This document shows positions 15,001-58,353 of a DNA stretch of 64,000 bases, piece after piece (positions within the stretch are counted from its first letter, which is position 1; the number at the start of each line of letters is the position of its first letter). The stretch covers positions 7,192,001-7,256,000 of the forward strand of contig OZ176052.1 of the NCBI GenBank assembly GCA_964247055.1. Direction: 5' to 3'. Position numbers and translations under genes: made by a program. The notes below the pieces were generated by a model. It was not told the origin of the DNA. It ran no database searches and saw nothing but the letters and a program-made list of their open reading frames with translations. This DNA is from Paragordius varius (Eukaryota > Animalia > Nematomorpha).

Positions 15001-15031
15001 ATTTGTTAAAACAATTAAATTGATGCAATAA
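9076..15031 (+). CDS. PWP1: Periodic tryptophan protein 1 homolog (WD40, ribosome biogenesis/chromatin), 486 aa; exons 9076-9138, 9160-9460, 10416-10541, 11349-11488, 11978-12130, 12910-12971, 13312-13447, 14128-14314, 14739-15031
   Basis: All introns are GT-AG and phase-compatible; CDS 1461 nt. The product has the PWP1 N-terminus (SCFTWVPPGFAAEKP), an acidic region, IKPNDYLI, YVYNEVEDSFYVHHDI..DSIPLSCEWL, VWDLDVDGALEP and WD repeats (MASGGADGIVSLWDL; INSLEWHPSESHLLLSAASDG; YWNPH; IKLWDV). Confidence 0.93.
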
Positions 15032-15701: not shown

Positions 15702-18700
15702 TTAAAAAAATGTATTTGGTTTAACGGTATTCTCACATGTCTTGATTGCGTTCGTCCTATATAAGACGACCTGACCTCTCAATGACTGTGAATGATCTGG
15801 TCTTGGCACCGAGGCGACCCAGTTTTGGAAGGTTAAGACGACATAATTTTTGTAAAAAGTAGTGTCAACTTGATCATCTCCCTTTGTTATGCTTACTTCC
15901 ACACCTCTATTGCTTTGATGGATCACCATCTATGCATTGCATTATATTAAATATATATTTGTTTAGCTATTGGCATTTTTTACCACAGAGCGATTTCGAA
16001 TATACATTTAAAAATATCTAGGATATTTTGGTCCAAATTTAAAAATATGTTAGATTAGGCGCATTATACAAAAAAATATTTTTTAAAAATGTAAAAAATC
16101 TTATTTCAATATTTTAATCCCCAAATTTTTTGTTTTAGACAAAAAAACTTGGAAATAAAAATGTTTGGTTTACAAAAAAATTATAAACTAATTTTTAATA
16201 ATTCTAATTTTGTTATCATTTTCAGTAGATTTTAGAGATTTTTATCTTATCTTTATTGTATAATAATACCTTTCAGCCTTATTTTTTGTTACAAAATTTA
16301 ATCTCTGGGATTTTAGGCTGAAAATTCTTACATAAAATTCAAAATCAAATGTACTGTTAATAAAGTATACCTTTTTTTGTTTGTGTGCTTGCAAATCGAT
16401 TTTGTCAGAGCTGTTAAAAAGATTAACTATAGATAGATAGTTATAGGTTCCTGCAGCATCAAATGTTACCTATCAATAACATATTAAGATGCAAAAATTG
16501 AATATAGAAAAAATACCTTAAACAGGACATATAGATTATAATTATTATTTATCCTGCTTAGATAAATTTTTAATTTAGCGAAATTCTTACCATTGAAACC
16601 ATCAAGTGAAAATGACTAAGATAGTTTCATATATTAGTTATTAGGAGTATTGTTAAATTTTTTTGTGAGAATGCATTATATTAACGTAATTTAACAATGG
16701 CTATATGTCTAAAGTGACCAGATTTTTTGAAGAAAAAAGCGGGACAAATCTGAGAAAGGGGGGCATGGGGTTCCAACCAAAAAATTTTATACAAAAAATT
16801 TATTGTAATATTTATTTATTTTTAACACAAATACATTATAAATATATATAAATATTTTATTTTTTGGTATATTTTTTTATTTGAGGGAATGCGTTTTAGC
16901 AGATTCTCATCCTTTTTTAAAATATAAGTCTTCACAAGTATTCGTCAAATTATATTTGACAGATAAAATGGCCTTTAAAGTTTCGACATGTAAATTTGAT
17001 TTTTCCGATGTCCACACCTGATTTAGTGTGGAAAAAACGTTCTCAGTAGCAGCGGTTTTAGGTAAAGACTAATTCCACAATTTTTAAAATATTGTATGGA
17101 ACATAGTTTGTTTCAAAATGATGAAATATTTCTAACAATTTCTTTTCTACTGTATTTTTTGTAGTCCATAATTTAAATTTGTCATTATTAATATATTTTT
17201 TAACTCTTCAGAAAAAGGATGATTTTCTGAAAGATTACTTTTTGGGAATTTTTGGGAGATGCAGATGTAATCAAATGATTTTTGAACATCGCACCAATTA
17301 AATTCTGGTTTTAATGTTATCCAATGATCATTGGATTGCACCGTCCAGTCTTCCAATAATCTTTACAGTTTGTTTAAAACATTTTTATATGGTACAGGAT
17401 ATCTTGGCGATTTATTAAGCTTTGTTTTTATAAATTAATTATAATATTGCGGATGGTTAATGGTATAAAATTATTTCCTTGACATTGGAATTTTAGGTTA
17501 CCAACTTCATTGGCTACTTTGATTGCCAAAATTTTGTCACCTTCTATAAATTTAATAACATTTTGAAAGAGAGAAGCTTGATTAAGTAGGAGTAACTATA
17601 TTTTTGAAGAGTCACTTTCAAAAAACTTTTGGAAAGTTGTAGGACATTTGTCCTGAGATAAAAAATAGGATTTTAAAGGATCGCACATTTTTAATGGCAG
17701 AAGAGCTAACCAACGAGTTTTACAATACATTTTTAGATAATAAACTTCGGCATTTTCACAGAATTCCCTTAAGCGTTTCAACGCGTACCATGTATATATA
17801 AAAATAGGAATGTTTAACAACTACATTTTTAATATCTAGGGATATCATATCAGCTGTTTGAATAGCGTTGTGTAATATATGTGCACACCCAGCGCCAATA
17901 ATGTTTTGATTAAGATTATCTGCTAATTTATGAAAAATATTTTTTGTTCCCCTCCTTGCTTTTCCACCGAAGTTGGTATTGTTGTTGTCAGCGCAATATG
18001 CGATGATTTTATTTTTTAAATTATTTTTTTCTAGAATATTCATTATTGAAGTAAAAATTATGTCGGAATTTTCACTGAGAGAAATAGAACTAAAATCTTA
18101 ATCTTTACTCCGGTTTATGGATAGGGATAAGAAATTAATTTTCAGCAAATCTTTTTGTATTTCAGAAAATGCATGTGGCGAAAGGACATTGCATACAATG
18201 ACTTCAGCCTTTGTACGGGCACATGTAAATTTTTTATTGAATAATGTACGAATAATCTATGAGGTACAATCCATAGATCTAAAGGAATGATTGTGATTAA
18301 CCGCGTGAAGAGATAAAACGCCTTTGGCTAGTGTCAAATTCTTTTCTTCCTATCCAAAAGCGGTTTTTCGATAAAAATCGCTCACTTTTAAGATGATGCC
18401 GCCATATCTAAACAATTCTTATGTTTCTGTGTTTCCATATGCTTTGTAAAATCATGCTTGCTGCCATGTGTTAGGGTGGATTCCCCTTCGCATAAAAAAC
18501 ATTTAACAAATGATTCATACTTCGTTTATTTGATAAAAGAAAATTTCATTAATTTATGGTTGAATTAATAACCTCTTTTTGTACTCATATTTTTTTTACT
18601 AATATTAGTTAAGATAACTAATGATAAAAAATTTATACGAATTTTTTAATAAAAAATTTAAATGTATTAAAAAAAATATTTTTTATATAATCTTGAAAAA

Positions 18701-21700
18701 GCGGGACATTTCGAAAACGTAGCGGGACGCGGGACAAAGTGTGAAAAAGCGGGACTGTCCCGCCAAAAGCGGGACGTCTGGTCACCTTATATATGTCTCA
18801 GGATCTGAAAGAATGTAATAAAATAACACTTATAATTTGTCCGATATTGTGATAACTATTTCTTAATTGTTATTTATTATTTTATCGAAAAATGTTTTAT
18901 AATTAAGGTTGTATATTAAAACAAATTTAAAAGTTTCATTTTGATGTAGAATGTTTATGACGTTTTATTTAAATAAATAACCTCATTCAAAGCAATTTGA
19001 ACATTCTCATCATTGACATAGTCCTTTAATAGGTCCGGGTTGAATGGCGTAAAATCGTCAATGATTTTTACCCCCTCCAAACTGCCTGATGAATATCGAG
19101 AGGCAATCCCTTCATACAGTGTATTATTGATGCGCACCAAATTTACACGGCTATTAATGAACAAGATGTTCTTAGTCACTTATATAAAACTTTATTTTTT
19201 ACTGAAATATATAGTTTTAAAAATTGTCAACATTAATTTATACCCAAAATCGGGGGCTATAATAACCTGATGAAATATATATATTCTGATAGGAAAATGG
19301 ATTATTATGATGCTTTTGGTTTTTGGCCCTTACGAGTGATTTACGAATGTTATACACTTTGTGGTAAGTGCTCCATATCAGAAAATGGCAAAATTTGCGC
19401 ATATTTTTTAAAAAAATTTTTTGGTGAAAGCTAGAGACTTGATTCCAATAAATATTTCTAAAATATATCATACTACATATAAAGAGCAAAAAAAATTTTA
19501 GATGTGGGCTCCAAAAGTCCCAATATTTTTTGCTCTTCTAGAATGGGCTAATCCTCTTAAAATAAACGCAAAAATGCGGGGATCGAGCGATAAAACTTTG
19601 GAATATATGCTATATTTTGACATCAACAAAAAATATTTTTTTAAAAAAAAGCATAATTTTTGAAAAACTAATTTTGAAAATTCTGTTGAGGCGTACTTCA
19701 CACTATTTTGAATCATGATGGAAACGGTTTGGCTTTAATATATAATAAAATTCGATGATGATGAACATTTTTATTACCTCAGAATTTTGATGAAAACATT
19801 CGTTTGTCCTAAAATTTATGTTTTATTATTGTTTTTTTTACTGAATTCATCTAATTTTCTAAGCTAACAAACCGTAATATAAAAACTCTGAAGTGTTAAA
19901 AAAAGTGTTTTTATAATATACCATTTACAGTTCAAATTCACACTTGAACAATTCAAATTCACCCTCCAACATTTCAAATTCACCCTTGAACAATTCAAAT
20001 TCACCCTTAAACAATTCAAAATCACCCTCGAACAATATAAAGTTACCCTAAAATAAATATGTGTTTTAAATTAAAAATTACCTATATTTTTTATATTTTT
20101 ATGAAATGAAATTTTCTTTAAAATTAATATAATACTGAAAAAAAATAAACTATGCCATAAGAATATATTTCATATTAATGATGAGTTATATTAGCCAGAA
20201 AACACATAATTTATTTTTAGGGTGAATTTGAATTGTTTAAGGGTGATTTTGAATTGTTTAAGGGTGAATTAATTGTTTAAGGGTGAACTTAAATTGTTTA
20301 ATGGTGAATTTGAATTGTTCAAGGGTGAATTTGAATTGTTCGAGGGTGAATTGTAAATGGTATATCTAAAAGTTTTATACCGTTTCGAGCATGCCACACA
20401 CAAAAGTATGAAGTAGCTTCAACAAAATTTTGCTAAATATTAATTTTTTTAAAGTATACAATTTTTAAAATTTTGGTAAATATCAAATTTAGCATATAGT
20501 TAAAGTTTCGTCACGCAATACCGGCATTTTTGCGTTCATTTTAAGAGGACTAGCTCATTTTAAAGGAACAAAAAATTTGGGACTTAGCCCACATCTAAAA
20601 AATTTTATTAAAAATATTGTTTTACTTTTTATATGTTATTTATGATGTATTTTAATGATATTTTTTGGAATGAAGCCTCTAGCTTTTACCAAAAGGCTTT
20701 TCTTAAATCACTCGTAAGGGCCAAAACCAAAGGAACCATCATAATCCTGATATATTTCTCTATCAGAATATAATTTCATCAGATTATTTTTTTGTGGACA
20801 CTGTGCTTTGTCAAAGTATAATTGGTAAAATTCATAATAAGTTTATATAATGGTATTTAAAATGTTTCATGTATATTGCAAAAGTACCTGTATAGCACAC
20901 CATCGTTATAGATATTATAAGTATCAGATTCAGTCAAAAACGCGCAAATATCTTTCATATCATAGTACTGATCTATAAAAAAACAAAGAATATCGCATCT
21001 TTGTAATAAAATTACACATGTTCTTAGTCAAAAAATTATAAATATTATTATTCCAATTTTGTCAAAAAGTTAGAAACCCCTATAAATGATCAATTGAGTA
21101 TTTAAAAATTGATATAAAATAAATAAAACCTATCTAATACTGTTTATAAATATATTTTTTGACATTTAGCTGACAGTATGTAAACATAATTCTATCATAT
21201 GGGTAAAACTGCTCTCAAAGGCCATGTACATTAAACTCTTAAAATATTTAGAAGTGTATTTCAGGATAGATGTAAACAAAACTGCTTAAATAGCTGTGTA
21301 ATCCTTTACAGGTTTTTTGGTAAAAAAGCATATAATTTTGAAAGGATTCAATTATATATATATTGTTCTAATGGCCATCGGCTTACACATTTTGTCGCTG
21401 CCCTCTTTCACATTAAAGCCACAACTTTTAAATTTTGGAAACCATGACATGTTCTAATCGATGGAGCATGATCACTATATGTTTTACCAACAAACGACAT
21501 TCAGCAGCCTTTTCCTTCTGATAAAATAAGAAGATCAATGATGCCGCAATAGGCACAAATTTCGACATGATTATGTATGATAAAAATAAGACGTTACCTT
21601 TTGGCAGACTCATATTTTGTGTTAGTTTAATAAAGGATGAACAACATGAGATGCAACAAAACGTTAACGACATATGACTATACCTGGTATAGTCCGGTTT

Positions 21701-24700
21701 AATTATGCTTTGTGTTGCACGTTAAGAATAATTATTGCATAATATGTAAAACAATATCATCACACCACAAATTAAAGGGAAATATAACTAATCATTAATT
21801 AAAGGTTTAATCGAAAGAGCTTTATTTACAAAATTAATCATAATAACAACATTTCCTTTTCTAAAAAGGTTAATAAAGCTCTATCAAAATCTATTTTCTA
21901 TGAGGAAATATTAAAAACGAACGGCCAAGGACAGTAAAAAATATTTCATTTTTTTTTAAGTTTTAAACTTTTTGATTATAGGAAAATCAAATATTAATTC
22001 AGAAATTAATTATTACATCTTGATAATTATACAATATTCCCAATAATTAACTATGTTTTCAAAAAAGACTTTTATAATTAACACAAATATTTAATCTTCC
22101 CACAACCGAAGAGAAAATCTTTAGTTTTATTGTGCCGTTTTGCTCAAAAAGATACCTTATAAAAGCATGAAATTTAATTCTGACATTAATAGGATCTTAA
22201 TTTCATAATCCATGTTTAGCAATAGAGATCATCTCTATTGTTAAATCACTTTAAAAAAAAAATTAAATTTAATGAGACAACTTCATTTAACATTTTGTCA
22301 TATGCGGATACTGTTAATTTAAAATAACATGGATATTATTTGAATACAATAGGATTTTGATTGGATTAATTAAGTTTGAGTACATATACATTGCTAGGTT
22401 TTCATCAATTATTACCGGATAGTATATGCAGCAAAGGGAATATTATTGGCTGTGCTTTTACTACTATTTCCAATAATAAAATTCTTTGCTCTATATGCTA
22501 TCGGGCAATGTATAATAAAAAATTAGCAACTTATATTTATATATTACTGGGTTCAGCACTAAGGAATTTGCGATATGAGCGCGTAATATTGCTGGACGTA
22601 TCTGTAGTTTGTGGAGCATCAAGAGCCTTTAAGCCTCCAGATTGTGAGTGAAAGATTTTTACGACATAATAATTTTCATAAAATTCTTTAACCATTACAG
22701 TACCATCAATGTTTTGGGCTTGGATCTAAAAGAAAATATATTAATAACTGTTTAATGTTTTAATATAGTTTCTTTGTTAACAAAGTTGCTTTAATAAATT
22801 TTATATTTTAATAATTTTTATCATATTTTCAGTCAAAAGCAACATTTATAAAAGCAAAATTATTTCGGTTGTTTTTGCTTGAAAAAATGTTGCGTTTGGT
22901 TGCAAATGTTACTTTTGTCTAAAAATGGCATAACATTTAAAATAATTTTTTTAATGTTTGAATTTAAGTTTTGTGTAACCTTCCTGATGGCATCTGCATA
23001 ATAGCTGAAAGATTGGCCTTTCATTTCAAAGCAATCTTCACCATTTTCTCGGTATCTCATAAAACACATTGGATAGGATTCGTTGAGAGGAAAAGATTGC
23101 CAAGTTTTTCCTAATTCAATCTGTTTTTAAATGATATGGTTATTACTTTCAAAAATATTTAAAAAATTTAAATAAAATTTATTTGTCCATACAATAAGTA
23201 TAAAAATAGATTATTTAAAAGGTATTTCTGAAATTGGCTTTTTACATTAAAAATTTATCTTAAATTGTCTTAAACAAGATGGCCCTTATGTGTTTTTGAT
23301 ATGGAAACTAGTGGTTATTCAAAAGTACATATCATATATGTGGTTACCTCAAATCAAATAATGATTTGTGTAGATAGGTTTTGAACAGAATTATATCTCA
23401 TTATATACCGTTTCCTCAAAGTTTTCCCAGTTAATCGAAACGTTTTTCCAGTCAATCGAAACATTTTCCCAGTCAATCGAAACATTTTCCCAATCAATCG
23501 AAACGTTTTCCCAGTCAATCGAAACGTTTTCCCAGTCAATAAATACTTTTTCCTAATAAAAAAACGGTTTTATTTTTCATAATAAATATCAAAAGAAGAT
23601 ATAAAAAGAAGTTTTAACCATTATCAGCGTGATATTAGAATATATTTTTTGTAAAACACAATTATTGAATGGCAATTTTCCAATTTTTGTCGATAATATT
23701 GTCGGGAAAAAATATCTAAACAAAAAATTTTTTAGATAAAAGTTTTGATTTGAAAATATTAAATAAAAAGGATATTTGACTAAAATAGTGGTGTCCTACA
23801 CAAATGGTTTCGCGGGCCACATTTTTAACTCAAAAAGTGGCGAGCCGCATTCGAAATATATACGGGCATTCATAAATAATTTATTCGATTTTAGACGTAA
23901 GCCTGAAATTACAAACACAATATAACAATTTTTTTCAAGTTCGTTGCCAAACATACTTATTCAGAAAAATTGCGTAAGAACTATCAATTTTACTTAGATT
24001 ATGGCCATATTTTTGCATATGGGTTTCCAAATCTTTCGCGGGCCTCAGAATCTCCCAGGGCCGCGTGTTGGCCACCTCCGGAATAAAGGTTAATTATATT
24101 ATATAAATTATGGCAAAGTAGAGATGTTTAAAATCCAATTTAAAGCGTTAAATGACCAATTTGAGACGAAAATGGTATATTTTAAAACTTTTATTATTTC
24201 AGTCGTGTAGATTTTAAAAGTTAGCCCAAAATATGCTTGCCATTGATAGAATAAATATTATTATAAATATTTTATTAAAAATACTCAAATTCCACAAAAT
24301 ATAACCTTTATAGAATAAGTCATTAATGATTGTGATTGGAATGTAATTGGAAAAATTGCCATTCAATAATTGTGTTTTACAAAAAATAATATTCTAATAT
24401 CACGCCGATAATGGTTAAAACTTCTTTTTAAATTGTTTTGAATACCATTTACAGTTCAAATTCACCCTTGAACAATTCAAATTCACCCTCGAACAATTCA
24501 AACTCACCCTTGAACAATTTAAATTCATCTTTTAACAATTCAAATTCATCCTAAAAATAAATTTTGTGTTTTTGAACTAATATAACTCATTTATTAATAA
24601 GAAATATATGTTTATGGTATAGTTTATTTTTTTTTAGTATTATTTTAATTTAAAACCAAATTTTAATTTTTAAAAATATATAAAATATAGGTAATTTTAA

Positions 24701-26426
24701 ATCTTAAAAAACATATATTTTATTTAAGGGTGAATTTGAATTGTTCGAGGGTGAATTTGAATTGTTTAAGGGTGAAATTGAATTGTAAATGGTATATTTA
24801 TTATGAAAAAAACCGTTTTTATTGATTGGGAAAACGTTTTTATTGAGTGGGAAAACGTTTCTTTTGACTGGGAAAATGTTTCGATTGACTAACGTTTCCA
24901 TTGACTGGGAAAAGGTTTCGATTGATTGGGAAAACGTTTCGATTGACTGGGAAAATGTTTCGATTGACTGGGAAAACGTTTTTTTGATTGGGAAATGGTA
25001 TAGTTATTTTCCGTTTAATGTGCCAAAATAAAAAACCTGTATGCTCTCAAGTTATATAAAGTCTATACAGTATTTAATTAAATATTAAAAAAAGCTTTTT
25101 AAACTTACAGTAACAATGGCGACTCTCCGAGAAGAATAACGTCTATATGTGTATAAAAAATGCATAGAATATGGGTTTATTAAATGTTACAGTCATGTAT
25201 CCTTTATTTTATCAAAAATTAATTTTCTTCGTTAAATGGGCATAAATATTTGTTAAAAATGGGAAAACAAGAGCTCTACGGTATTAACAATATCATTTTA
25301 TTTAAAAAGTATAAGAATTACCATAGAACTTTTGTTTCTTCCATTTATTACCAAATATTGTACCCATTTAACGAATAAAAATAAATTTTTGATAAAATTA
25401 AGGATACATGACTGTAATTTATTAAACGAATACTCTATTTATAGAAAACGCTTACGTTCTTTCCAAATAATCAGATATAATCTGGAATGGATTGGGTTGA
25501 GGTGCCGTTGCACTAGTAGTAACTTCTGTAAATATTTTAAATTAATGGATATATGCTGACGATATCTATACATCCAAAAAATTGAACCTAGTTGAGAATG
25601 ACTTATTTTGAAGCTTAGAATACACTTTTGCAATTACGAATTGGGGAATTTTAGAAAATAATTTACGATTCAATTACATACACAAAACGAAAAATTAAAG
25701 GACAAATATTTTTTTAAAAAACAACCATAAGTTTTTAAAGTTTTGTTATTTCCTCAAAACTAAATAATTACATTTTAAATAATATAATTGAGTTTATTTC
25801 CAATTTATATCTCTATAATCCCCATTTCAACTCAAAACGATCAGTTGAACTTAAAAAATGTTAAAAAATATGGTTGCCTTTTTTAAAAAAATTCTCTCCT
25901 ATTTTTACATTTTGCCTGTAAATTTCAATTTTTACTGTACTTTCTACTACTATCAATATTTAAAATTAGGGGCCATAATCAGAGGCTATTACTAAAAATA
26001 TCTGCGAATACAAATTAAGAAATTAATAGATTTACAAAAACCTATCCATTTTTAAATACATAGATACGATTTCTAAAACGTTTTTGTTATTTACATATAA
26101 TGGGGGCAAACCTAAGAACTACAGAATATTATATATTATATAACCAAATTTTCAACAAGTTTTAATTCTTCCTTTATAAATTCAGAATAAACCAATGAAT
26201 TAGTTATCTTTATTAATGTTTTCAATATTTAATTTACCAACATATATTTTATAGGTTAACCACAGATACCGTATATATTATGACAATTGTTCTTGATTTA
26301 TTATATTATAAATAAATTTTTTACACCTACATTTAAAAAAATTTAAAATATAAGAGCGTAAAACTTACCTTGATTAGAAATACAGCGAACCAATGTATAG
26401 AGTAATCCGACAAATAGAACGTACAT
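15702..26426 (-). CDS. Unknown secreted protein, tandem paralog 1, 353 aa; exons 26426-26369, 25525-25456, 25142-25109, 23120-22980, 22725-22548, 20972-20888, 19150-18982, 16469-16371, 15929-15702
   Basis: GT-AG, phase-compatible chain of 1062 nt. Hydrophobic N-terminus MYVLFVGLLYTLVRC. Exons are homologous to paralogs 2 and 3 (PMC, CFEM, HSQxGG, YYDxKDICAFL, YEG, FDAxGxYN, terminal Cys). Confidence 0.85.
16710..18789 (-). mobile_element. hAT-Blackjack-type transposon copy 2 (2080 bp), perfect 8-bp TSD TATATGTC, in intron 7 of paralog 1
   Basis: tatatgtc|taaagtgaccaga ... tctggtcacctta|tatatgtc, with gcgggac subterminal repeats and a decayed transposase. Confidence 0.93.
16880..18500 (-). 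pseudogene. Fragmented hAT transposase (Blackjack copy 2)
   Basis: ADNNNTNFGG, GCAHILHNA, YCKTRWLAL and a C-terminal dimerisation-like TAA.E.VFS region, spread over several frames. Confidence 0.88.
19262..20805. mobile_element. Foldback/MITE family M5 (long imperfect inverted arms ~19262-19740 and ~20370-20805, ...CACTGTG end)
   Basis: ggcccttacgagtgattt at ~19326 mirrors aaatcactcgtaagggcc at ~20705; tagatgtgggct mirrors agcccacatcta. The left end is degenerate. Confidence 0.7.
19921..20360. mobile_element. MITE family M1 (TA|CCATTTAC...GTAAATGG|TA, arms of 21-bp ttcaaattcacccttgaacaa units), nested in M5
   Basis: TA on both flanks and inverted tandem arrays read directly. Confidence 0.88.
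21200..21690 (+). pseudogene. Possible decayed SWIM-zinc-finger transposon fragment
   Basis: YCSNGHRLTHFVAALFHI followed by TCSNRW in another frame resembles the SWIM C..H.AAL motif; multiple stops. Confidence 0.25.
22822..22928. mobile_element. Short decayed MITE, family M3 (21-bp gaaaaaatgttgcgtttggtt unit)
   Basis: Similar to 42729-42925, with inverted ends cagtcaaaagc / cttttgtctaaaaatgg. Confidence 0.65.
23786..24080. mobile_element. hAT (Charlie-like) MITE nested in M2
   Basis: Ends TAGTGGTGTCC / ggccacctccg; degenerate 8-bp TSD gactaaaa/gaataaag; same family as 48288-48578. Confidence 0.75.
24445..24792. mobile_element. MITE family M1, second copy, inserted in the right arm of M2
   Basis: TA|CCATTTACAGTTCAAATTCACCC ... 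GAATTGTAAATGG|TA. Confidence 0.88.
25165..25437. mobile_element. ~273-bp foldback MITE filling most of intron 2 of paralog 1
   Basis: acagtcatgtatcc (~25190) mirrors ggatacatgactgt (~25402); the arms are inverted along nearly the whole length. Confidence 0.75.
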
Positions 26427-28603: not shown

Positions 28604-31600
28604 TTAATGTCCCTTTTTACATAGAGCTAATGGTTTTGGAACGTAGATATAGATTGGATCAAATTTAATTGCCGGGATATCTTGATTTTCAGTTATCCTT
28701 TGTTCATAATTCGTGACAATGTAAGATTCATAAAAATTGAATTGAGTTCGACCATTATGTTCTGCCGTGTATACGTTAACTCCATCCTTATTTTGTTTCA
28801 CTATAATCTAAACATATTTAATTTTTGTAAATTGGAGATTATAGAATTGTTGGTGCTTTATTAGCAATTACTCCGTGAAATAATGTAATAAATAAAATTA
28901 AATGAAAATTAATTGAATATTATCCAACTGTGCAATTGTAATCTAAATGCAGTTGATACTACGAATTTTTATTAAATTTATATAAAATTTACGAAATTAA
29001 ACTAAAAAGTTTGACATAAATACTAGGTTTTAACCATCCGTTTTATTTTTTGGAGATAATAACTGTTCATATTTTATTATTATATTGATACAATATACCA
29101 ATAAAGCGACAAAAAAATAAAGTTTATATTTATTAAGCTATATCAATAAAGGATTGTCGGTTTTTTACTTAATAAATATTACAAGCATCATTTACAAGAG
29201 TAATCTAGACAAAACGTAAAAATATAAAGACAAATATTTTTTTTAAAGATAACCATTTTTCAATCTTAATTTTTTATATATAAATTAGTGTTTAGCATTT
29301 CTAAATATGAAATTGAGATGTTATAAATAACATAATCAATTACATATAAGATTGTATAAATAATTTATTTTGGAAATATATAGAGTCTTGAAAAAGGATT
29401 GTTGTCTTTTGAAAAAAAAATATTTGTCTTATATTTTTACGTTTTGTCCGGATGATTTTCATTTTCATTGTAAATTGACTATTAGTCTAATAAGCCATTT
29501 ACGATATGATTCACTTATATTAATAAAAAAACTGTAATATATACTTGTTTATATTTATAGGTATCAAATTTTTTGAATTCAGACGTGTTGTAAATATTGC
29601 TAATCGTGAAATGGTTGTATGGGCCGGTGGCATCAAATGTCGTCTAAATTAAATTATTGATGATATGATGGAAATTTTTTAGAGTATAATAAAAAGCCAA
29701 TAAATTAAATTTACACACTACTATGCATATGAGCGTGTTTGAAAATCTCTGAGGAATTTTTTGTCATAATTATTTTATTACTTGGCAAGTGAGTGAGTGT
29801 CTAAAGATTTCAAGCTTCCAGTTTTACTATATTTATCGAACTATGCGTTTTATTTATATATATTAGGAGAAAATTTTAAAATCGGTTAAAGTTTTTTGTT
29901 TGGTTTATCAAAGAAAAAATCTAAATTTTAAAAAACATTTTTCCATATAGGACATTCACATTGATAATGATAAAATGAATATAATAGAAGATTAATTAGC
30001 CAAGATAGTACAAGATTTTAACATAAATAATAATTTTCATTTTTTTATTCTTCTTTTTTAATTCATTTTAATCAACTTAAATCGAGTCGGGTAATAATAT
30101 TTATTTATATATTCGTTGCTTGAATTGGAGTGGTTAACATGAGAATCAAAAATAAATTCAATAGAATTTAATGTTATTTTGGTTGTAAAACTACGTTGGA
30201 ACTGGTCATAAAATGGTTTTATAGTCAAATTTTTTTTACGGGAAACACTTCACAGTTTTTCATCTTAAGTATGGTTAAAAATAAATTTTTGGCGTTTAAA
30301 TATGTTGTATTAACAAACGTAGTCAAATTGAGTCATTGGACAATTATTTAAGTAAATAGCCTGAAATAGTCATATTATAAAGTGAAATACATCTAGTAAA
30401 AGCGCTTCAAAAAATATATAGTTGATTGTATAGGAAAAAATATAAATTTATATGGTTGTGGTTAATGGTATGATATAGAAATAATAGGATTATAATGGGA
30501 CAATATCTAGGGTGACCAGATTTTTCAATGAAAAAAGCGGGACAACTCTGAACGGAAGGGGGAGGAGGTTACTATCAAAAAATTTTCAACAAAAAATAAT
30601 GTCATAATATTTTAAAAATAATACAATTTATAAGTATAAAAAAATGTATATGTCATTCGTTAATATATTTTTTATTTGAGTGAATTTGGAGCAGGTTGTT
30701 ATCATTTTTTAATATATTATGAAAATCTTCACAGAATTTGTTAAATTATATTTGACAATAAAATGGCTTTTAGAGTTTGAACATTTAATTTTAATTTTTT
30801 TAATGTCCACACTTGATTTACTCTAAAAACGCGTTCAATCGCAGCGTTAGTTCCAGGTAAAGGAGATTGTGAATTTCACAATTTTTAAAACAATATTGTG
30901 AGGAATGTAGTTTCTTTCAAAATGATGAAATATTTTCAACCATTTGTCCTCTACTGTTATTTTTTCTGATGCCCAATATTTGAGCTTTTCCTTATCAATA
31001 TATTTTTAACCAATGATACTTTAAAAAGATCATTTTCAGAAATATGACTATTTGGGAATTTTAAAGAAATATAACAAATGGTATAAAGCCTTTTTATATA
31101 GCTCAGAATATCCTGACGGTTTATTGCATCTTGCTCTTCGAGCTCGTTAATACTATTGCGAATAGTAAATGGCAAAAAATTATTTTCTAACCTCTCTTGA
31201 TATTGGTATTTTAAAAACTTCATTTGCTACTTCGATTGCAGATAATTTGTCACCCGTTTTAAAAAAGAGCAGCTTGATTTTGTAAATATACTAGCCATAT
31301 TTTTGAAGATTCACTTTCAAAAAACTTTGCTAAAATTTTAAGACATTAATCTTGCTATAGAAAGTAGGATTTCAAGGGATCATACATTTTCAAATTTCGA
31401 GAGTTGGCAGAAGAGCTAACCAACGCATTTTACAGTCCAAGTATTTTCTGAAATTCAACTTCCTCATTTTCACAAAATTCTTTAAGCATTTCAATGCGTA
31501 CAGCGTATATATGGAAAAAAGAATATATTTTAACAACAACATTTTCCACTTCTTCTGGTAACAAATCAGTAGCTGTTTGAATAGCGTTATGCATTATATG

Positions 31601-40284: not shown

Positions 40285-40315
<31 letters not shown>

Positions 40316-41558: not shown

Positions 41559-41602
<44 letters not shown>

Positions 41603-44417: not shown

Positions 44418-44821
44418 CATAATAATTTGCTATACATTCTTTGAAACTTAATGCTTCACAGCTACAATATAGAATATTAAAGAATAATGGGATGGTAGTT
44501 TCTAGAAATAAAAATCAAAATTTATGAACGATTTAAAAGCTATAAGTGAGCCCATATACAAATATTATGAATATTTCACGCAATTTATTAGTTTAAAATA
44601 TGGGCATTAAAAAGCATCATAATAATTTGCTATACATTCTTTGAAACTTAATGCTTCACAGCTACAATATATTATATTAAAGAATAATGGGATGGTAGTT
44701 TCTAGAAATAAAAATCAAAATTTATGAACGATTTAAAAGCTATAAGTGAGCCCATATACAAATATTATGAATATTTCACGCAATTTATTAGTTTAAAATA
44801 TGGGCATTAAAAAGCATCATA
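44418..44821. repeat. Tandem duplication of a 200-bp unit (2 mismatches)
   Basis: cataataatttgctatacattc starts at 44418 and at 44618; the copies differ only at aga/att. Confidence 0.95.
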
Positions 44822-46290
44822 GCGCTATTTTTATTGCTCTTATCTCCAATATTAACCATCGATCGACAAATATATATAATGCATATATTCGAAATTGTAT
44901 AAGAAAAAATAATTAGCAAGGATATTTTGATAAAGAGTGGGAAACTTATAAAAAGTGAGAGCACAAACTTAATTAAATTACATTTTTTTCTATTTAGTGC
45001 GTTACAATGATATTTTAAATATATAAAAATGCAAAAGCCAATGGCAGAAAATTATTTTGTTTTCTAATATTGTTAATGTAATATTAGGGTTGAATGAGCA
45101 CTTATCAAGGAATTTGGATTGTAGCTAGGAGCGTTTCTTAAAGCTGGTATATTATTATTTTAATGATTAAAACAGAGTGTGTGGGAAATTTGGGTTTTTT
45201 GGAACTCTACATATTTATGTAATAAACCGATCTAGCATAACAAATTTTTATGGCCATAATCTCTATATTTAGTCGGAATCAAGTTTTTGAGTTACATAGT
45301 AATTAAATGCAGATGAATCTGGTTTAATTCACTATCTTATATATATATATAATATATAAGATATATTATCTCATAGAAAAATAAGAAACCTTTAAATAAG
45401 TAGCGAAAAACAAAAATATTAATGTTATCAACCCATAGATAAATTTTGTTTCTTATCCATTTTTATCGTGTTGGCAATTCTCAGTTTTTTAGGGCCAATA
45501 GAGGTTTCTTTCAAAGATTAAAGTATATAAAACGAAAACCAGGGTGGTTACTGACGGTTAATATTAAAACTTGAGTTTACACATCTTACGCAACGGACTT
45601 TTGTATAGTTATGATAAAATGTTTTAATTATTTAAACTCATATATTTGGGATGCGTTGGCCTTTTAAAAATTTTATATTATTTTGATAATAATATATAAC
45701 TCAATACAATTCTTTTGGGAGTATACAACTTTATACCATTATTTAAAAAAATTATCTAACTTAGTTTCCTATTCAAACAAAAATACTCACAACAGAAAAC
45801 CTTAATTAATTTTCAATTAGAATATCTGAAATCCCTATTGTAATAATCTATGAATAATCTCTGTAGCTTTTATTAATTCACTTTTTATTTTTTAATATTT
45901 GCTCTTAGTATGGCTGTTAAATTTAATTATAGAATCAATACATATTGATTAATTGGTTATGATTCCTTTGATACTAAATAATGATAAAAAACTATGTAGC
46001 TTATGGCACAAATCCAAAAATGAATCTAATATCATTTATTTTAAAAGAAATTTACCATGCTCTCATTTTAAAGTGGAGGTTTTTAGTCAGCCTCAAATAT
46101 ATATAATTTAAGTCATACTATAGTTGACTATGTAATATATAATATGGGTATACCAAGTTTTCTATATTGTAACTCTTCATTAATTAATTTATTTATTGAA
46201 TTGGACATATATATAGTCAATAAAAATTGAAGCGCAATCATTTTTAACCCCATTCGATTTAAATAAAATGGCGTTTCCTTATTATTGTTC

Positions 46291-49200
46291 TTATTTACAT
46301 GATATTAATGGTTTTCGATTATAAACATAAACTGGCTCAAATTGGGCTGCCGACCGATCATCATTTCTGTTGATCCATTCTTCATATTCAGTTACGATGT
46401 AAGATTCATAAACTTTGACTTCGGTTGTGTCATTTTTTCCTGTGATGGTTAATTCAACTCCATCTTTAGATTGTTTAACCAAAATCTATTAAAGGTATAT
46501 GAGATATTAAAATAAAGTCTAAAAATATATAAGTTTTGAAAATTTATCCGCTTATATATATTTTTTTATAATATCCATAATATTGAATAATAATTAGAGT
46601 TTTTAGTTAAAAATGTACTTGTTTATAGTCTTTGGTATCAAATGTTTCGTATTCAGACATGTTAAAAATATTGCTAATTTTGAGATCGTTGTAAAGACCG
46701 GATGCATCAAAAGACACCTAATTGATAATAACTTATATGTCATGGGTTATGGGAATAAATAAGTTATCAAGTTTTATTTATTACCAAATTTAGAAAATAC
46801 ACGTGATATAAATTACATGTTAGCATTGTAAGAAGGATCGGAAATCACTTTTACAATTAAAATACACATTCCTCATTAAAACCTAGATAAACCCAGGTCT
46901 AAGAATTATAATTTAAATTTATATTGGCTTTTTAACAATCAATAACAAGAAACTAGAGTTTAGTATCCAAGTATTGGGATAATGTTACAAACGCAGCTAA
47001 CAAATCCGAAAATGGCTTACGTTGTATTTAAACAACCATAAACAGCTCTATTTACAGAATATTTATTATTTATTTTTTTACCAATGAATGTATTTGGCTA
47101 AAAAATGCAAATACAGTTAGACATTTGTTCTGATTTTTATTGTGATTTGATATTTTTACATCTTTTTGTCCAAAATAAACTTTTTGATTTTCTTGTTAAC
47201 GCCACCATTTTGTAACTATATATAAAAAAATGATTCTGTTGAAACAATTATTTTATATGCACGTTTAAAAAAATAAATTGCTGAAATTGTTTCAAAGGAT
47301 AATCGTTTTTTTATAAAAATATGATGAATGTTATCAACTATATTAAAAATTTAAATATTATTTTTGTCATATAATGAGTCATCAATAATTTTTTTTAAAA
47401 TATTTGGTGTTTTAAGGTTTTTAATAATGAAATTAAAATATTATAATATTTATGCTATAATTGAAAATTTTCCTCACATTAGCACCGTAATTTTTAATAT
47501 ATTTAATTTTTTCGGTTTTGTGTAAATTAATTAGAATTTATCAAGCATACTTTTGAATGATAACTAAATTCTATTATATCGATGAATAATGATAACACAT
47601 TAACATACTTATTGAAAATTAATCAAGCTTATTATGGTAATTTATAAATGCAAATATACGTCTTTTATGCATAACTATTGTAAAATGTTTAACCTCTTTA
47701 GTATCCACAACGACATCCTCTTTACTTCTAAAGTCTGTGGCCTCTAAATACAAATTGTGGACAACCAAAACACCTTCCATAGGAGATGCAAAATAATGTG
47801 ACACTACACCCTCATAAACTGTATCATTGGTTTTGATTAAGTGTAAATCGCTAAATGGCATAATAAAAATTTTAACATATTATTGCCAATTACAGATCTT
47901 GTGCTAACAATTGTTAAACTCTGTTAAATAACGTTTTAAACAAAATAAATATTGAAACTAAATTAATATTGAAAATACAAAGTGATGTGTGAATCTCTTA
48001 GTCAATAGTAATCGCAGACTAGTTTCGTGCGTGTTAGCACTCATAAGTACGACACAACTATTTGGCTTGGGGTTTTGAATGGAAAAGTCTTTTATTATTA
48101 TCGATTAAAAATTTTAACCGAAAATTGTTTATGTTCAACTAATATATTACAGCTCCTCATCATTTAGAAAAAAATTTAATTTACGAAGATGGTTTAAAAT
48201 TTTAACATTGAGCGACGATTCTCATGAATCTGTATTATATAATTACATTTTTAAAAATCTTTATTTGCAAAATTTTACCATTTAAAACAGGGGCATCCAA
48301 ATGGGTTCACGGGCCGCATTTTCGGATCAAAAAAAGTGGCGGGCTGCGTTCGCAAAATATATGGGCAATAACAAATATTTTATTAGATTTAAACATAAGA
48401 TTGTAAAATCTACTATTTATTTCATCATTTTTTGGTTATTTCATGGCCAAAATTCAAAAAAATTTATTAAAAATTTGCTCTAGTAAATGATTCTACTGAT
48501 ATTTTGCTAAAATTTTGTATCTGAAATTTCTCGCGGGTCGCAAAAATATTTTGGAGGGCCGCATGTTGGACATTCCTGATTTAAATAGTATGATGCGTTA
48601 GCTGATTTTAAAATCCTTTCACTTTAATTAGTGTATTTTCGAGAATTCGTTCTGAATCGCTTTCAATTAACCGAAGCAAATTTAGTTACTTAAACATGCA
48701 TTAAACAATAAGAAAGTGATCAATGATTATAAATCGGAAAACAATTATTTCATATTAGAATTATTTTGCCAAGGTTTTTAACATATACAATTCGAAAAAA
48801 TAGAGAATATTTATACCTGTATAAAACGCCCTTATCATAAATATTATAGGTTGCTGATTCATGCAAAAAGGCGCAGATATCTTTGATGTCATAATATTCA
48901 TCTATTATAGAACGCATTTATTAGAAAAAGATTATATATTTGGTGTAAAATTGTTGAAAGCAATATAGGTACAAATTAATGGCATGCGATCTATAAAAAT
49001 ATAATTATTAAATTTATAAATTCCGAAGATTTTATCATGTGAAAATGTATGTGTAAATGTAGGTTTTAATTTGTTTATGTGGTAATTAATTGTATTGTAA
49101 AAATTATATATAGTTATAGTACTAAAAACCGGATAGAAGGTACTTATAAACCAGGGGACAAATGACTTCGTGGGCCGCCTCTCCGATCAAAAAATCCACG

Positions 49201-52200
49201 GGTCGCATTCAAATTATATATAGGTAATTAATTTTTTATTAGATTTTATACATAAGAATATAAATTAATATGAACACAATATCAAAACTTATTTTCACTA
49301 ATATTTTATTACTTGCCAAAATTTGGGAAAAGCTTATTCAAAAATTGTTTTTGAAATAATAATTAAATTTGAATAGAGTAGATTTTTGCAAATTATAGTA
49401 TATGCGAATTTATTTGGTAATTTTCTAAATATTTTACGGGCCGCATTTTCACCCCTGTTATAAACCATCATCATTATTTTGAGTTCTTTTCTTTATTTCT
49501 TAGTATTTGTCGTTTTTTGGTCCGAGTGATTTTAGCTAATACCGTTTATAATTTTTTCTCCAATATTCATTATATTTTTCCAGTGGGTATAATGTTTTTA
49601 TGTATATGATATATGCTCCGATATTTTGAAATGCTCTTTCAGGCTCGCCTAACATTCATCACATAAAGAGTGGTTGTTTGAAACACCCGACTGTCATGGA
49701 CAATCTTTTCTTTGTAGTTAAAATATTTTAGTTAAGTTTTGAACACAGTTTGCAGTCATTTGTATATAGTATTTTTTTAGAATATGTATTTTGGTAGTTA
49801 CGATTTTAATGGATGTAGGAGTTTTGCTTAAGAGACATTTTTGTGTTTTTATTATGGTGTAATAAATTATTGGGGAGATCACATTTTTTAAAAAGATTTT
49901 TTTCTTAATTTCAAATACTGCTGGCATCTATTGTATGAGCTGTGTGAAGGATTTGGATAATCGATTATATCTGTGCAGGATGGTGATGGCTTACGATAAA
50001 CTTGTTTTATTTGACCCTAACTTTTTGTGAGATCATCTAAAAATTTTATTGTATTTAGACTGTGCTTCATAGAAAATGTATTAAAATTGTGATTTAAATT
50101 GCATTAGCAGTCCATTCTATGTCACCAAATAAAATATATCAATCCCTTTGCTTATGAAACATCACATCATATTCAAAATAGTTATAGCACCAAACTTGGA
50201 TTTACAACTATTATTTACCAACATTCCCAGATTAAACTTAAAACAATTGATTAACTTACAAACCCCCCAGCGTGTGGGACAGTTATGTCGACACAGAGTT
50301 TTTCCTAAGCCTAACCATGCAGACCTTTATATGATTCAAATGCATGACCACCCTCCACAGACACAATCTATTTGCCAAACTCTATAATTACATACAATAT
50401 GGATGTCAGCAGTATTTAATCTGAACTGTACCTCAAAAAAACGTTATTCAAAAATGGTCATTCCAGCAATGTAAAATTGTTAAATAACAAATGTAAAATA
50501 AAGATAAAAAATTTCTACAAATTTTAAAAAAAACATTATAGAGTATTAAACAGAAAAATTTATAAACTATGCGAAAAAGAAATATTTTATGAGTTTACTT
50601 AGCCTAACAATATAGGAATACAAAATGTTTATAAGTGAAAAGTGGATTAAAATGTTAAAGGGTCATTTTAGGTAGAGTATTAATTTATATATATTGCTAG
50701 CTTTTCAATTGCGAGATAGCATATACAGCGAAGACCATAATTATTGGCCAATTGCAGTCCAACCATGATAATATCCTTAATGCTATCTGGCAATAATTAA
50801 TGCACAGCTACAATGTATTCTTACTCATACTGTATATACCAGGGGTGGACCGCCTGAAAATATTTTTTTTTTAAAGATTTTATTGATTTTTTTCAGATAG
50901 TTGGCTACTTCTGAGCGAATTTAAATTTAAAATACAAAAAAATACGGTTTAAATTAAAAAAAAACGTCTAAGAAAAGAATGTAAAAAAATTATTTTATTA
51001 ATTATAATTCATATGTTTTGGAGCATTTGCATTAAAACTTAAAATCAGTCATTTCCCTTGAATATATCAAAACTTTGAGCAAAGCTTATTCATAAATCAG
51101 AAGCATAATCGTGAAGTTAGATTTGATTTGATACACCAAAAGTAGGTTTTTAAAACTTATATTTTAGAATGAGCCAAAAAAAGTTGCACAGATACAAGAA
51201 AGATTGGGAGCATGAATACTTTTTTATTATGATAAATGAAACATGCACCTGTCTAATATGCAATAGTACTGTTGCTTTGCCCAAAAAGTCAAATATTGAA
51301 AGACATTATAGATCTCTGCATCCACATTACTCCAAAAACTACCCCTTACAAACTCAAGAACGCAACATTAAAGTAAAGGAATTAAAAGAACAATTATCCG
51401 CCTCACAAAATAGCATACTTAAATACAACAAAGACTATAAAAATGCTACGATTGCTTCATTCAAGGTAGCGGAAATACTCATTCGGAACAATAAGCCATT
51501 CCAAGATGGTGAAATATTTAAAGAAGCCTTTATTAGCGCTTGTGCTATTTTATTTGAAAATTTTGATAACAAAAATAATATTATGACAGCTATTAAAAGC
51601 ATAAGCTTATCGAGAAATACCGTTATGCGCAGGGCTGAAGATATTGGTAATAATCTTGATGAAATTTTACATGAAAATAACTGTATTTTTTTTCCTTGCA
51701 ACTCGATGAGTCCACCGATTATGTTGGAATCGCCCAATTATGCATTTTTATTCGTATGATATTTAGTGATTTATCTGCAAAGGAGGAATTATTAACTATA
51801 ATACCTCTCCACGAACGAACCAGAGGGCAGGATATTTTTGACTCTTTTTATAAATTTATCACAGATACGAAACTTCCCATCGTAAAACTCGCATCTATAA
51901 CTACTGATGGAGCTCCAGCTATGATTGGCGTTAACAACGGCTTTATCGCTTTATGTAAAAATCACAGTGCATTTCCCAAGTTCATTGATTACCATTGTAT
52001 AATCCATAATCAAGTTTTATGTTCAAAAGTTTTAAAATACCATCATGTAATGAACCCCTGTTTTAAAATTGTTAACGCCATTCGAACAAAAAGCTTGTCC
52101 CGCCGCCAATTTCGAATTTTGTTAAATGAGTGCGGCGTGGAATATGGAGAACTTTTATTACATACTGATGTAAAGTGGTTGAGTCGTGCCGCATTTTTAA

Positions 52201-55200
52201 TTAGATTTAGGCAACTTTTACCACAAATAGAAATTTTTTTAGAGAATTCTAAATTTTCATACCCTGAATTGAAAGATCAAGATTGGCTGCTTGATCTTGC
52301 ATTTTTATGCGATATCACGGAAAAATTGCATAAATTAAACATCCAATTACAAGGAAAAGATAAAACAATAATGGATATGATGGGTGCTTTAAAATCTTTT
52401 AAGGAAACACTCAGAGTAGTAGAAACACAATTAAAAAACCGAGATTTAAAACATTTTTTTAATCTGGCAGCGGTGTCTGAAAAAATAGAGAATCTCTCTT
52501 TTGAAAAATATGCAGATGATATTGGTCTGCTTATTAATGATTTTGAAAAACGATTTTCATCTATAAATAAACTTGAAGACATCGCTATTTTTTATCATGC
52601 CCATTTAATAATAATAATAATGTTGAATATATTGCTCAAAACTCAGCCACTTTCTTGGTGTACCAAATTTAGCAGAGTTGGAAGAGGAATTAATAAATGT
52701 TAAATGCGATATCCATCTAAAATCATTAGGATCAGATATATATAAATTTATAAATAAAGATAAATACCCCCATATTTGGAAAACCGCTGCATTATTCAAT
52801 TCTTTTTTTGGATCCACATATTTATGTGAATCGGCTTTTTCAATTATGAATGCTATCAAAACTAAACAGAGGTCACAATTAACTAATAAACATTTAGAAT
52901 CATGTTTGAGAATTGCTTTGACTTCATTTGAACCTAATTTAGATAAACTTTCTGAATTTTTTCGCAGTCGGGCGTTTTAAATATTTTTTTCTTTATTAAA
53001 TATGGATGTTTATCGAGTTGTATTTTCGCTTAGGAAAAAGCCGATTTACTAAAAAATATGTGGATAGAATTAAAACTGATACAATTTTAATATACTCTTA
53101 TTTATGTTCAAATTATGGTTCTAAATTGGAATGCTATTTTTTATTTCTTTTATTTTTTGTATCATAATGTATTCTCCCCTGTAATTTCAAATGCATTGTT
53201 TAAATTTTTATATTGTAAAATTTCATATAATAGAAATTTAATAAATAAATATTTTGAAGTGTTTTATGTTGGTTAAAAAATTAAGGTAGTTAATAACCCG
53301 TTGTCTTTTAATTAAAATTATTTTTGTATTTGGTTGATAGATAAAAAAATTACAATTTTAAAATGGTTTAAACAAGTCACTCTAATCTGTAAAGCAGGTA
53401 TATACATCATTTAAAGTGTTGATTAAGTTTTTTTGATAAATATTTCTGGGTGACCGCGAACTCTTTTTTTAACAAAAAAACCAAAAAAAAGCTCGCGACA
53501 AAAAAAGTGTGGCCACCCCTGGTATATACCATTTACCAGTCTTAGAAAACGTTTTCTCAGTCAATCAAACATTTTTTCAGGCAAACGAAAACATTTTCCC
53601 AATCAATCGCAACATTTTCTTAGTTGATAAAAACGCTTTAGTTTTTGATGATATATATATATAACAATAGGATATAAAAATACCTTTGTGTATGTATAAA
53701 ATTTGTTTCGTTTAACAGTTTGCATTTTAATGGTTGTTTATATCAAACTCTAGTTGCCAATTTACAACACAGTAATGTATTAAAAAACAAAAAAAAGTTG
53801 AATAGATATTTTTTTTCTTTCTTTCATTCATTAAAATGTTTATTGTATTTTGACTAAATGTAAAACAGTGGAATAACTCTCAGTCTTATGGCAAAAGAAT
53901 TTAAAAAATATAAATCGGATATTTAATTGAAATTTTACTTTACGGAATATTTAATATTTAGGGTGCGTAATGTATATATATATATATATTTTGTGAGTAT
54001 TTTCAATACAAAAATTATTTTTAATAATGAAAAAAGAGGTTTAAAAAATAATTACTTTGTTCGAAATTAAGAAAGTTTTGGTAAGAAACAGTAACAGAAA
54101 CGTTTAAATCGCTGTTATTTTGAGGTGATGGCAATGCTTTAACGCCTCCGTCTTGAGAATGCAAAATTTTAATAAGGTTAAAATTTTTATAGTATTCCCT
54201 CATCACAACTATTCCATTCAAATTCAATGCAACAATCTATATTTCCAGATAATTGATTAATTATTCTTTGCAGCATATTTTCTTGTTATAAAGTATTGAA
54301 AATTAAAGAATTTTTTTAATAAACAAAGCTGTTACTGTAAATATTAGTGAATTAAATATTTTTTTTCTTTATGATTTTACGATGAATATTCTTGATAAAA
54401 TATAAAGAGCAATCTTATTTAACTGTATCTTCAAGGGCAATGATGATGTCATTAAATGATTTTATTTGCGATCTGGTCCGATCGGTATTTTAGAACAAGT
54501 ACTTATACTACATTTATTTATAAACTATATGTTTTTTAAAATACAGTGTTTACATGGATCATAATAAATTTCTAAATGACCTGTGTATAGTAGTAACTTT
54601 TAAAACGTTTTTTTAATCCAAAGTCTCCCATACTTTGCCCCACATAATTAATCCTTAATAAAAGATGATAATTTTATGTATACTGTCGATTTTCGTTCTT
54701 AATTCAACATTTTTTTATATTTATTAGATATCCATTCGTAAATCCTATCACAAAGGGTATGGGAAAAGATTGGAAAACAAGTTGTATTTGTACGCTAAAA
54801 ATTGTAATAGGGCAATTTATGGAATTGATAATGCTTTGAACTCTTGAAACTCTCTATTATAATCGTAAAATTAACGATAAAAATATTTTTAGTTAATAGT
54901 TTAGTTTTTTCATTATTTTCATTTATACCCATAAGGGAAGGCGATAAAAACTATTGTTTAATATCATTATTTATATTTAATTTTTGATAAATGTAAATGA
55001 AGTATGAACCTACCTTTGTTACAGCTTCAGGGAAAAAACCAAATGTAAAGTTATTCATCTCAAAGCAGTTCTCTAATCCTTCATTCGTATAAGGTATTAG
55101 ACACATTGGATTAGATGGTTTTTCTGGGAATAATTCATAACTCTTGGGTGTTATCTATAATATAATATATAAAAAAATAATAAATTAACACTTGGATACA

Positions 55201-58200: not shown

Positions 58201-58353
58201 TGTGGCTTGTGTGGCACAATTGATTCTATACATATATAAATTTTAATAAAAAATATCGTTTGAAATATTTTTTTTAGATTAAACATCTTTACCTTGAGCC
58301 ACAGCATTAAGTATAAGTGGAACTAAAAATATAGTTAAGTATAGCGAATTCAT
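46291..58353 (-). CDS. Unknown secreted protein, tandem paralog 3, 331 aa; exons 58353-58293, 58225-58171, 56362-56341, 55154-55014, 54236-54056, 48901-48817, 47850-47694, 46717-46619, 46485-46291
   Basis: GT-AG, phase-compatible chain of 996 nt. Signal-like MNSLYLTIFLVPLILNAVAQ. Same exon phases as paralogs 1 and 2. The 22-nt exon 3 is the least certain part. Confidence 0.83.
48001..48066 (-). ncRNA. Second hammerhead motif copy with a core mutation (CTTATGA), in intron 6 of paralog 3
   Basis: Minus strand gtcgta-CTTATGA-gtgc taacac gcac-GAAA-CTAGTC|tgcgat; about 90% identical to 34825-34890. Confidence 0.78.
48288..48578. mobile_element. hAT (Charlie-like) MITE, TSD atttaaaa/atttaaat
   Basis: cagggGCATCCAA ... 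ttggacattcctg termini with gggccgcat subterminal motifs. Confidence 0.85.
49152..49457. mobile_element. hAT (Charlie-like) MITE, perfect TSD TTATAAAC
   Basis: ttataaac|cagggg ... cccctg|ttataaac; same family as 48288-48578. Confidence 0.88.
49560..50420 (-). pseudogene. Old decayed hAT transposase relic
   Basis: Minus strand KTLCRHNCPTRW (hAT C.TRW motif) at ~50260-50300 and ERAF-like text at ~49630; heavily disrupted. Confidence 0.4.
50840..53521 (+). mobile_element. hAT-Buster/Charlie transposon (2682 bp), perfect TSD GTATATAC, in intron 5 of paralog 3, antisense to the host gene
   Basis: gtatatac|CAGGGGTGG ... CCACCCCTG|gtatatac; the central TA in the TSD is typical of the Buster group. 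Confidence 0.95.
51169..52980 (+). CDS. hAT Buster/Charlie-type transposase (GTF2IRD2/ZBED5-like), ~604 aa if three 1-nt homopolymer shortfalls are corrected
   Basis: BED-like CLIC...H..H, LQLDESTD, SITTDGAPAM, HCIIH.Q.L, V.WLSR and C-terminal FGSTYLCESAFS.M. Frame breaks at T8 (51686-51693), T6 (52588-52593) and A4 (52638-52641). Confidence 0.85.
53529..53650. mobile_element. Left arm of a decayed M2 MITE, directly abutting the Buster element
   Basis: TA|CCATTT followed by degenerate ttttcccaatcaatcg units. Confidence 0.65.
55189..56334. mobile_element. piggyBac-type MITE (TTAA|CACTTGGAT...CGAAGTG|TTAA) containing an inverted copy of itself (55522-56106)
   Basis: Segment order X-Y-X'-Y', compared with the simple X-Y' copy at 61183-61760; TTAA flanks. 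Confidence 0.85.
57565..57851. mobile_element. MITE family M6 (TA|CAGTAAAAAC end)
   Basis: tacggacaaaatgtaaaaatat mirrors atatttttaccttttgtccgta. Confidence 0.75.

Follow-up and report, generated by a model that had tools for sequence, protein, structure and literature searches.

The 64,000-nucleotide stretch analysed here (the window, C3:7192001-7256000 in an assembly of 110.5 Mb and 44 contigs) carries three related genes, named A, B and C, arranged head to tail on the minus strand. We consider it likely that all three are working members of a taxon-restricted gene family, which comprises at least seven core and two divergent genes, and that their products are soluble secreted glycoproteins stapled by cysteines. 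The family appears to be new, and of an ordinary kind. Across the whole window the G+C content is 23-30%. The introns are kilobases long and packed with transposon debris, which marks the DNA as an animal-type nuclear genome.

Exons were detected by translating minus-strand open reading frames (ORFs) from stop to stop and comparing them all-against-all by blastp. Six frames of exon size occur three times over in the window, each time in the same order (E 1e-6 to 1e-28), and in nucleotide alignments that include the flanks, similarity stops at the AG and GT dinucleotides. The borders of exons 4-9 were set from the AG/GT sites consistent with the reading frame, which left one sensible acceptor and one sensible donor for each. 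The small 5' exons of C and B were located by tblastx and by reading the sequence, exons 1 and 2 of gene A by local protein alignment. Exon 3 of gene A was placed at 25142-25109 through its 82% conservation with copies on contig C1 (D1-D3, see below). A 16-nt micro-exon at 25337-25322 had been a candidate for this exon and was dropped, since the D copies do without it and conserve 25142-25109. All searches, folds and statistics reported here were run exon by exon, with counts summed over exons.

The resulting models (Table 1) have nine exons each. All 24 introns of A, B and C are of the GT-AG type, their phases are 1,2,0,0,1,2,0,0 in every gene, and with each exon read in its own phase there are zero internal stops in open frames of 334-353 aa. 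Exons 4 (141 nt), 6 (85 nt) and 8 (99 nt) are of equal length in the three genes. In-frame, stop-free introns that would lengthen the reading frame were also sought, and every candidate carries stops. An initial annotation, made from the letters of the DNA, had described three head-to-tail minus-strand genes of nine exons with exactly these intron phases, and the phase-consistent models bear it out. The interval that it gave, 15702-58353, runs exactly from the stop codon of A to the ATG of C.

We searched the genome with profiles of exons 4, 5, 7, 8 and 9. Each of them returned the same seven core loci: the three genes of the window, a second tandem trio on contig C1 (D1-D3) and a single copy (S) elsewhere on C3. 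In six of these (A, B, C and D1-D3) every one of the nine exons is open and the splice sites are canonical; in S this applies to exons 2-9. Two divergent genes complete the set, one on contig C6 (T), found by the exon 9 and exon 8 profiles, and a weaker, more distant one on contig C2. The genome-wide copy search that had been proposed as a check therefore gave seven core loci and two divergent ones, a family of at least nine genes, the last two of which keep mainly C-terminal exons. The interval from D1 to D2 also contains a stray exon-8-like fragment (C1:3405549-3405602).

Exon 5 is unrecognisable in both divergent members. Exon 9 could be aligned across the nine members, none of which deviates at one Gln, a Gly-Val pair and the terminal Cys; the C-terminal half thus appears to be the family's old core. 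A further-reaching proposal would be that we are dealing with an undescribed fold or domain family of a barely sampled animal lineage, in which exons 6-9, with the third and fourth cysteines, form an old module that was reused on C6 and C2. We regard this as unlikely at present. If the animal is parasitic, the exon 6-9 module might act in secretions that come into contact with the host. In the C2 gene we noticed Thr-rich, mucin-like open frames upstream of its exon-9-like exon (C2:13106.2-13106.7 kb), and this gene may combine the C-terminal module of the family with a glycosylated stalk.

The copies in the window are not equivalent. Amino acid identities, which like dN/dS were obtained from Nei-Gojobori counts summed across exons, are 62% between B and C and only 34-38% between A and either of them, whereas A shares 82% with D1 or D2 (D1 and D2 share 93% with each other). 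The array therefore mixes two subfamilies, and the nearest kin of gene A are on contig C1. The description of the locus as an array of three genes holds for the shared architecture, but not in the sense of three equivalent copies, because A falls into one subfamily and the pair B and C into another. The family would have grown by tandem duplication and one move between contigs. D1 and D2 show zero differences in exon 4, but 10 synonymous and 11 replacement changes in exon 7; this mosaic suggests gene conversion in the second array. Copies would thus be partly homogenised by gene conversion and maintained by purifying selection.

The dN/dS ratio (omega) is 0.22-0.34 for every pair with unsaturated synonymous sites (0.34 for B-C), as expected of working genes under purifying selection. 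It is conceivable that the copies are non-working, that is, decaying duplicates or coding-like pieces carried along by repeats, and both the transposon remnants and tandem arrays that fill the introns and the stray exon-8-like fragment would fit such an origin. However, A, B, C and D1-D3 each retain nine open exons with canonical splice sites and S retains exons 2-9, the phases are conserved, omega is well below 1, and the copies sit in two arrays and at single loci, which is not how repeats disperse. This explanation is largely refuted, and we give it hardly any weight.

The same numbers bear on the possibility that the proteins are effectors released at the host interface by a parasitic animal and diversifying in an arms race. 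Secretion, multiple copies and tandem expansion would suit this idea, as would exons 7 and 9, where conserved blocks are separated by variable stretches and indels. However, omega is 0.22-0.34 overall and below 1 in almost every exon. The few pair values above 1 (exon 3; D2-D3 in exon 8) rest on one to three changes, and a search for convincing positive selection exon by exon across the paralog pairs showed none. Diversifying selection was therefore not seen, and a role as rapidly evolving host effectors appears quite improbable. With seven core copies, the family shows the several intact paralogs under purifying selection that characterise orphan secreted families.

The predicted products share a clear organization. 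Exon 1 encodes a stretch of 19-20 residues that is hydrophobic and has small side chains at positions -3 and -1 ahead of a Gln-Glu pair, and its phase-1 intron falls right at the likely cleavage site. This agrees with the signal-peptide-like first exon noted earlier: exon 1 would be a cleavable signal peptide that directs the product into the secretory pathway. The C-termini of the core copies are hydrophilic. Since a hydrophobic tail is missing, no anchor is expected, and the product would leave the cell in soluble form; between the two options of a secreted or a surface protein, these features point to the former.

Exactly four cysteines occur in the mature chain, at positions that are fixed in all seven core paralogs: exon 4 holds the first two, at a distance of 11-12 residues, exon 6 the third, and the fourth is found within a few residues of the C-terminus. 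They are the four cysteines that had been singled out before (PMC, CFEM, DICAF and C-terminal). The conserved blocks YYDxKDICAFL, TYNIYxxGVLY and HSQxGG are likewise present as described. Conservation is highest in exon 6, where A, B and C are 78-81% identical; in exon 4 the residues S, P, C, C-F-E, F, A and K are invariant in the seven paralogs. The letters C-F-E-M in exon 4 recall the fungal CFEM domain (PF05730), an eight-cysteine module. Given two cysteines in exon 4, four in the mature protein and no Pfam match, we take this as a coincidence of letters.

The last two cysteines are retained in T and in the C2 gene, which points to a Cys3-Cys4 pair and, by elimination, to a Cys1-Cys2 pair; two disulfides are therefore probable. 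The first would form a local clip inside exon 4, the second a long-range staple joining the exon 6 block to the C-terminus. Like secretion and glycosylation, this pairing is predicted from the sequence.

Each protein contains 2-7 N-glycosylation sequons, about the chance expectation for its Asn-rich composition. The N-x-S sequon of exon 8 is invariant in all seven core paralogs, and the N-x-T sequon of exon 7 is kept in six of them. The earlier remark on several sequons is thus correct and gains weight from these two positions, although the total is at chance level. The net charge of the mature chains is negative (-1 to -17), Val, Ile, Tyr, Asn, Thr and Ser are abundant in them, and Chou-Fasman averages show only a slight preference for beta structure. 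Folding exons 5 and 9 separately with AlphaFold (seven-sequence alignments) gave strands at residues 2-6, 9-15 and 20-26 of exon 5 and at residues 2-6, 9-15 and 21-27 of exon 9, in both cases a three-stranded beta meander in the first 27 residues (predicted local distance difference test, pLDDT, 66-82). The proposed beta-rich character thus finds some support in the strands of both fragments, while the composition is only weakly beta-leaning. Prompted by the similar predicted strand patterns, we looked for an internal repeat among exons 5, 7 and 9; hhalign probabilities were below 1%. The mature chain would be at least partly beta-stranded and carry one invariant and one nearly invariant N-glycosylation site.

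Table 1. Gene models and conserved exons of the family, its loci elsewhere in the genome, and a transposon in an intron (positions are those of the window unless a contig is given; C1, C2, C3 and C6 are contigs).
Feature	Position	Strand	Description
Gene C	58353-46291	minus	9 exons, 334 aa
Gene C exons	58353-58293, 58225-58171, 58097-58067, 55154-55014, 54236-54056, 48901-48817, 47850-47694, 46717-46619, 46485-46291	minus	last exon includes stop
Gene B	43187-28604	minus	9 exons, 335 aa
Gene B exons	43187-43130, 43057-43006, 40808-40781, 38568-38428, 37490-37310, 34660-34576, 33966-33807, 29643-29545, 28807-28604	minus	
Gene A	26426-15702	minus	9 exons, about 353 aa; subfamily of contig C1
Gene A exons	26426-26369, 25525-25456, 25142-25109, 23120-22980, 22725-22548, 20972-20888, 19150-18982, 16469-16371, 15929-15702	minus	
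Exon 1 of C	58353-58293	minus	20 codons, hydrophobic core, mean Kyte-Doolittle 2.1, tail A-V-A then Q, phase-1 donor
Exon 1 of B	43187-43130	minus	hydrophobic, tail A-R-A then Q, phase-1 donor
Exon 1 of A	26426-26369	minus	peptide identical to D1 exon 1; GTAAGT donor
Exon 4	C 55014-55154, B 38428-38568, A 22980-23120	minus	Cys 1 and Cys 2 (PMC, CFEM)
Exon 5	C 54056-54236, B 37310-37490, A 22548-22725	minus	HSQxGG block; 16 invariant columns
Exon 6	C 48817-48901, B 34576-34660, A 20888-20972	minus	Cys 3 (YYDIKDICAF ... GVLY)
Exon 7	C 47694-47850, B 33807-33966, A 18982-19150	minus	N-D-T sequon in C, YEG block, then variable stretch with indels
Exon 8	C 46619-46717, B 29545-29643, A 16371-16469	minus	invariant N-x-S sequon
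Exon 9	C 46291-46485, B 28604-28807, A 15702-15929	minus	Cys 4 near C-terminus, and stop
Genes A, B, C	this window (C3)		
D1-D3	C1:3.398-3.427 Mb		second tandem trio; nine exons each, same phases
S	C3:4.688-4.694 Mb		single copy; exons 2-9 placed, exon 1 not convincingly located
T	C6 about 727-733 kb		divergent gene; exons 6-9, same phases
C2 gene	C2 about 13.107-13.109 Mb		more distant; keeps exon 9, perhaps exon 6
hAT transposon coding region	51169-52980	plus	intron 5 of gene C; three overlapping ORFs; passenger, not part of the family

The family was not recognised in the initial annotation, and the library searches agree: exon-wise Pfam, PDB sequences, a word search, 1.84 billion protein representatives and metagenome contigs yielded no relative. 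Single exons of B and C had no Pfam match at E up to 10. When every member of the exon 4, 7 and 9 alignments was searched at E up to 5, the one Pfam match was the Tc toxin repeat PF18807, whose score over the initial 24 residues of exon 9 was 13-16 bits (best 15.7, E 0.014; cut-off 29 bits). It is confined to the near-identical A, D2 and D3 and absent in B, C, S and D1. The matched stretch is the one that AlphaFold draws as a beta hairpin. Being far under the cut-off and unaccompanied by any other Tc-like feature, the match is treated as chance.

PDB sequence profiles gave nothing better than E 0.26 for exons 4, 5, 7 and 9, and neither the exon 5 nor the exon 9 alignment had a match in the word search, which sees only proteins of query-like length. 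Against the 1.84 billion representatives, the exon 5 profile had a single match, a Glu/Lys-rich repetitive protein of 3442 aa hit in 14 short stretches. Upon inspection, this protein also matches eleven unrelated Pfam families and is best seen as a compositional artefact. The scan of metagenome contigs returned four loci with a 25-residue match each; the locus that was inspected belongs to a bacterial contig of high GC content and lies in an ORF that reads to us like a periplasmic solute-binding protein, and we attribute the match to chance. In the ESM Atlas, exons 5 and 9 showed low recognition, with phage tail-tube look-alikes or nothing.

It is quite possible, though less likely than not, that the family has diverged strongly from a known extracellular beta fold such as that of lipid carriers or lectin-type sandwiches; it would then work as that family does, probably by binding a small ligand or glycan. 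Queries made of fragments cannot see a remote link of this kind, exons 5 and 9 have predicted beta strands, and secreted four-cysteine glycoproteins of known folds are common. However, no exon has a consistent sub-threshold match to one family. The only repeated match is the PF18807 one, seen in near-identical copies, and the comparison of profiles between exons shows no internal repeat.

Ependymin-related proteins (PF00811) resemble the predicted products in general character, as they are secreted, N-glycosylated and beta-rich and have four conserved cysteines. However, no exon searched matched PF00811 at E up to 5-10, the family protein is roughly 100 residues longer, and its cysteine spacing of about 12, 95 and 170 residues appears to differ from that of ependymins. 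Schistosome-type micro-exon genes contain a run of symmetric exons whose lengths are multiples of 3 nt, mostly 36 nt or shorter. Here, the exons are of ordinary size (28-228 nt; internal exons 28-181 nt) and the phases 1,2,0,0,1,2,0,0 are mixed, unlike those of symmetric micro-exons. The family also differs from those of short or disordered peptides, as its product has 335-350 residues and is probably folded and cysteine-stapled. It resembles other lineage-restricted secreted families in its signal-peptide-like exon 1 ending in phase 1, its tandem copies, its lack of database relatives and its purifying selection.

Several points weigh against the interpretation as functional genes of a taxon-restricted secreted family. 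Outside libraries were queried with one exon at a time (27-75 residues), and queries this short are poorly suited to detecting remote homology. The sole search of a full-length-protein library used exon 5, whereas exon 9 would have been the better probe. The libraries gave no self-match to proteins of this genome; the lineage is therefore unsampled in them, and "restricted" may only mean "not yet sequenced". With exon-sized queries and an unsampled lineage, lineage-specificity marks a limit of detection and is not proof. Beyond the meander, the exon 5 and exon 9 models are unreliable, being fragments with a mean pLDDT of about 60. The splice junctions are those indicated by conservation and consensus sites. 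As for function, an extracellular binding role (carrier, lectin-like) or a matrix role rather than an enzymatic one is our guess, loosely held; it comes from the lack of an enzyme signature and the general character of such proteins.

Orphan secreted families often hold lineage-specific biology, for example in the cuticle, eggs, secretions or host contact. Taken alone, the present family is an ordinary sort of discovery for a poorly sampled animal genome. For a genome that seemingly has no public annotation, it is a well-defined addition, supported by selection: six copies are mapped exactly at the exon level, the seventh except for exon 1, and the two divergent relatives in part. With clean models, holders of RNA or proteome data can check where and when the genes are used, and folding of the full protein could show whether the fold is new.

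The introns and surroundings of the array contain various repeats. The hAT transposon in gene C matches zf-C2H2_12 (the Spin-doc zinc finger, E 3.8e-10) and Dimer_Tnp_hAT (E 1.9e-5) in Pfam. A decayed transposase-like repeat on the minus strand occurs at about 16684-18800 (intron 7 of A), at 30410-32680 (intron 7 of B) and at 1-1900; its copies are 50-90% identical at the peptide level and lie in intron 7 of both A and B, though these genes are old duplicates. The introns of gene A also hold inverted pairs of 21-nt tandem arrays (19927-20053 with 20215-20358; 23421-23557 with 24810-24995). The units within a pair are reverse complements, 160-1250 nt apart, and the pairs look like the arms of foldback or MITE-like (miniature inverted-repeat transposable element) elements. 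Further arrays of this 21-nt type are found at 42805-42924 and 2782-3024.

A repeat at 34803-34985 and 47961-48104 had been a candidate exon. Gene B has it on one side of exon 6 and gene C on the other, and it occurs again at 59436-59540; it was therefore rejected as an intron repeat. No family reached its gathering score in an Rfam scan of the window. A sub-threshold match to the hammerhead ribozyme HH9 (score 27.8 bits, gathering score 52; E 5e-5 when 351 nt were searched) lies at 34819-34889 on the minus strand, in intron 5 of B and in the sense of the gene, and the repeat around it is the one that recurs in intron 6 of C (47961-48104) and downstream of the array (59436-59540).

A plus-strand gene at 9166-15031 converges on gene A; its reading as a PWP1-type WD-repeat protein gained no support from Pfam searches of three frames. 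Between B and C, a 200-nt unit is tandemly duplicated with 99% identity (44418-44821).

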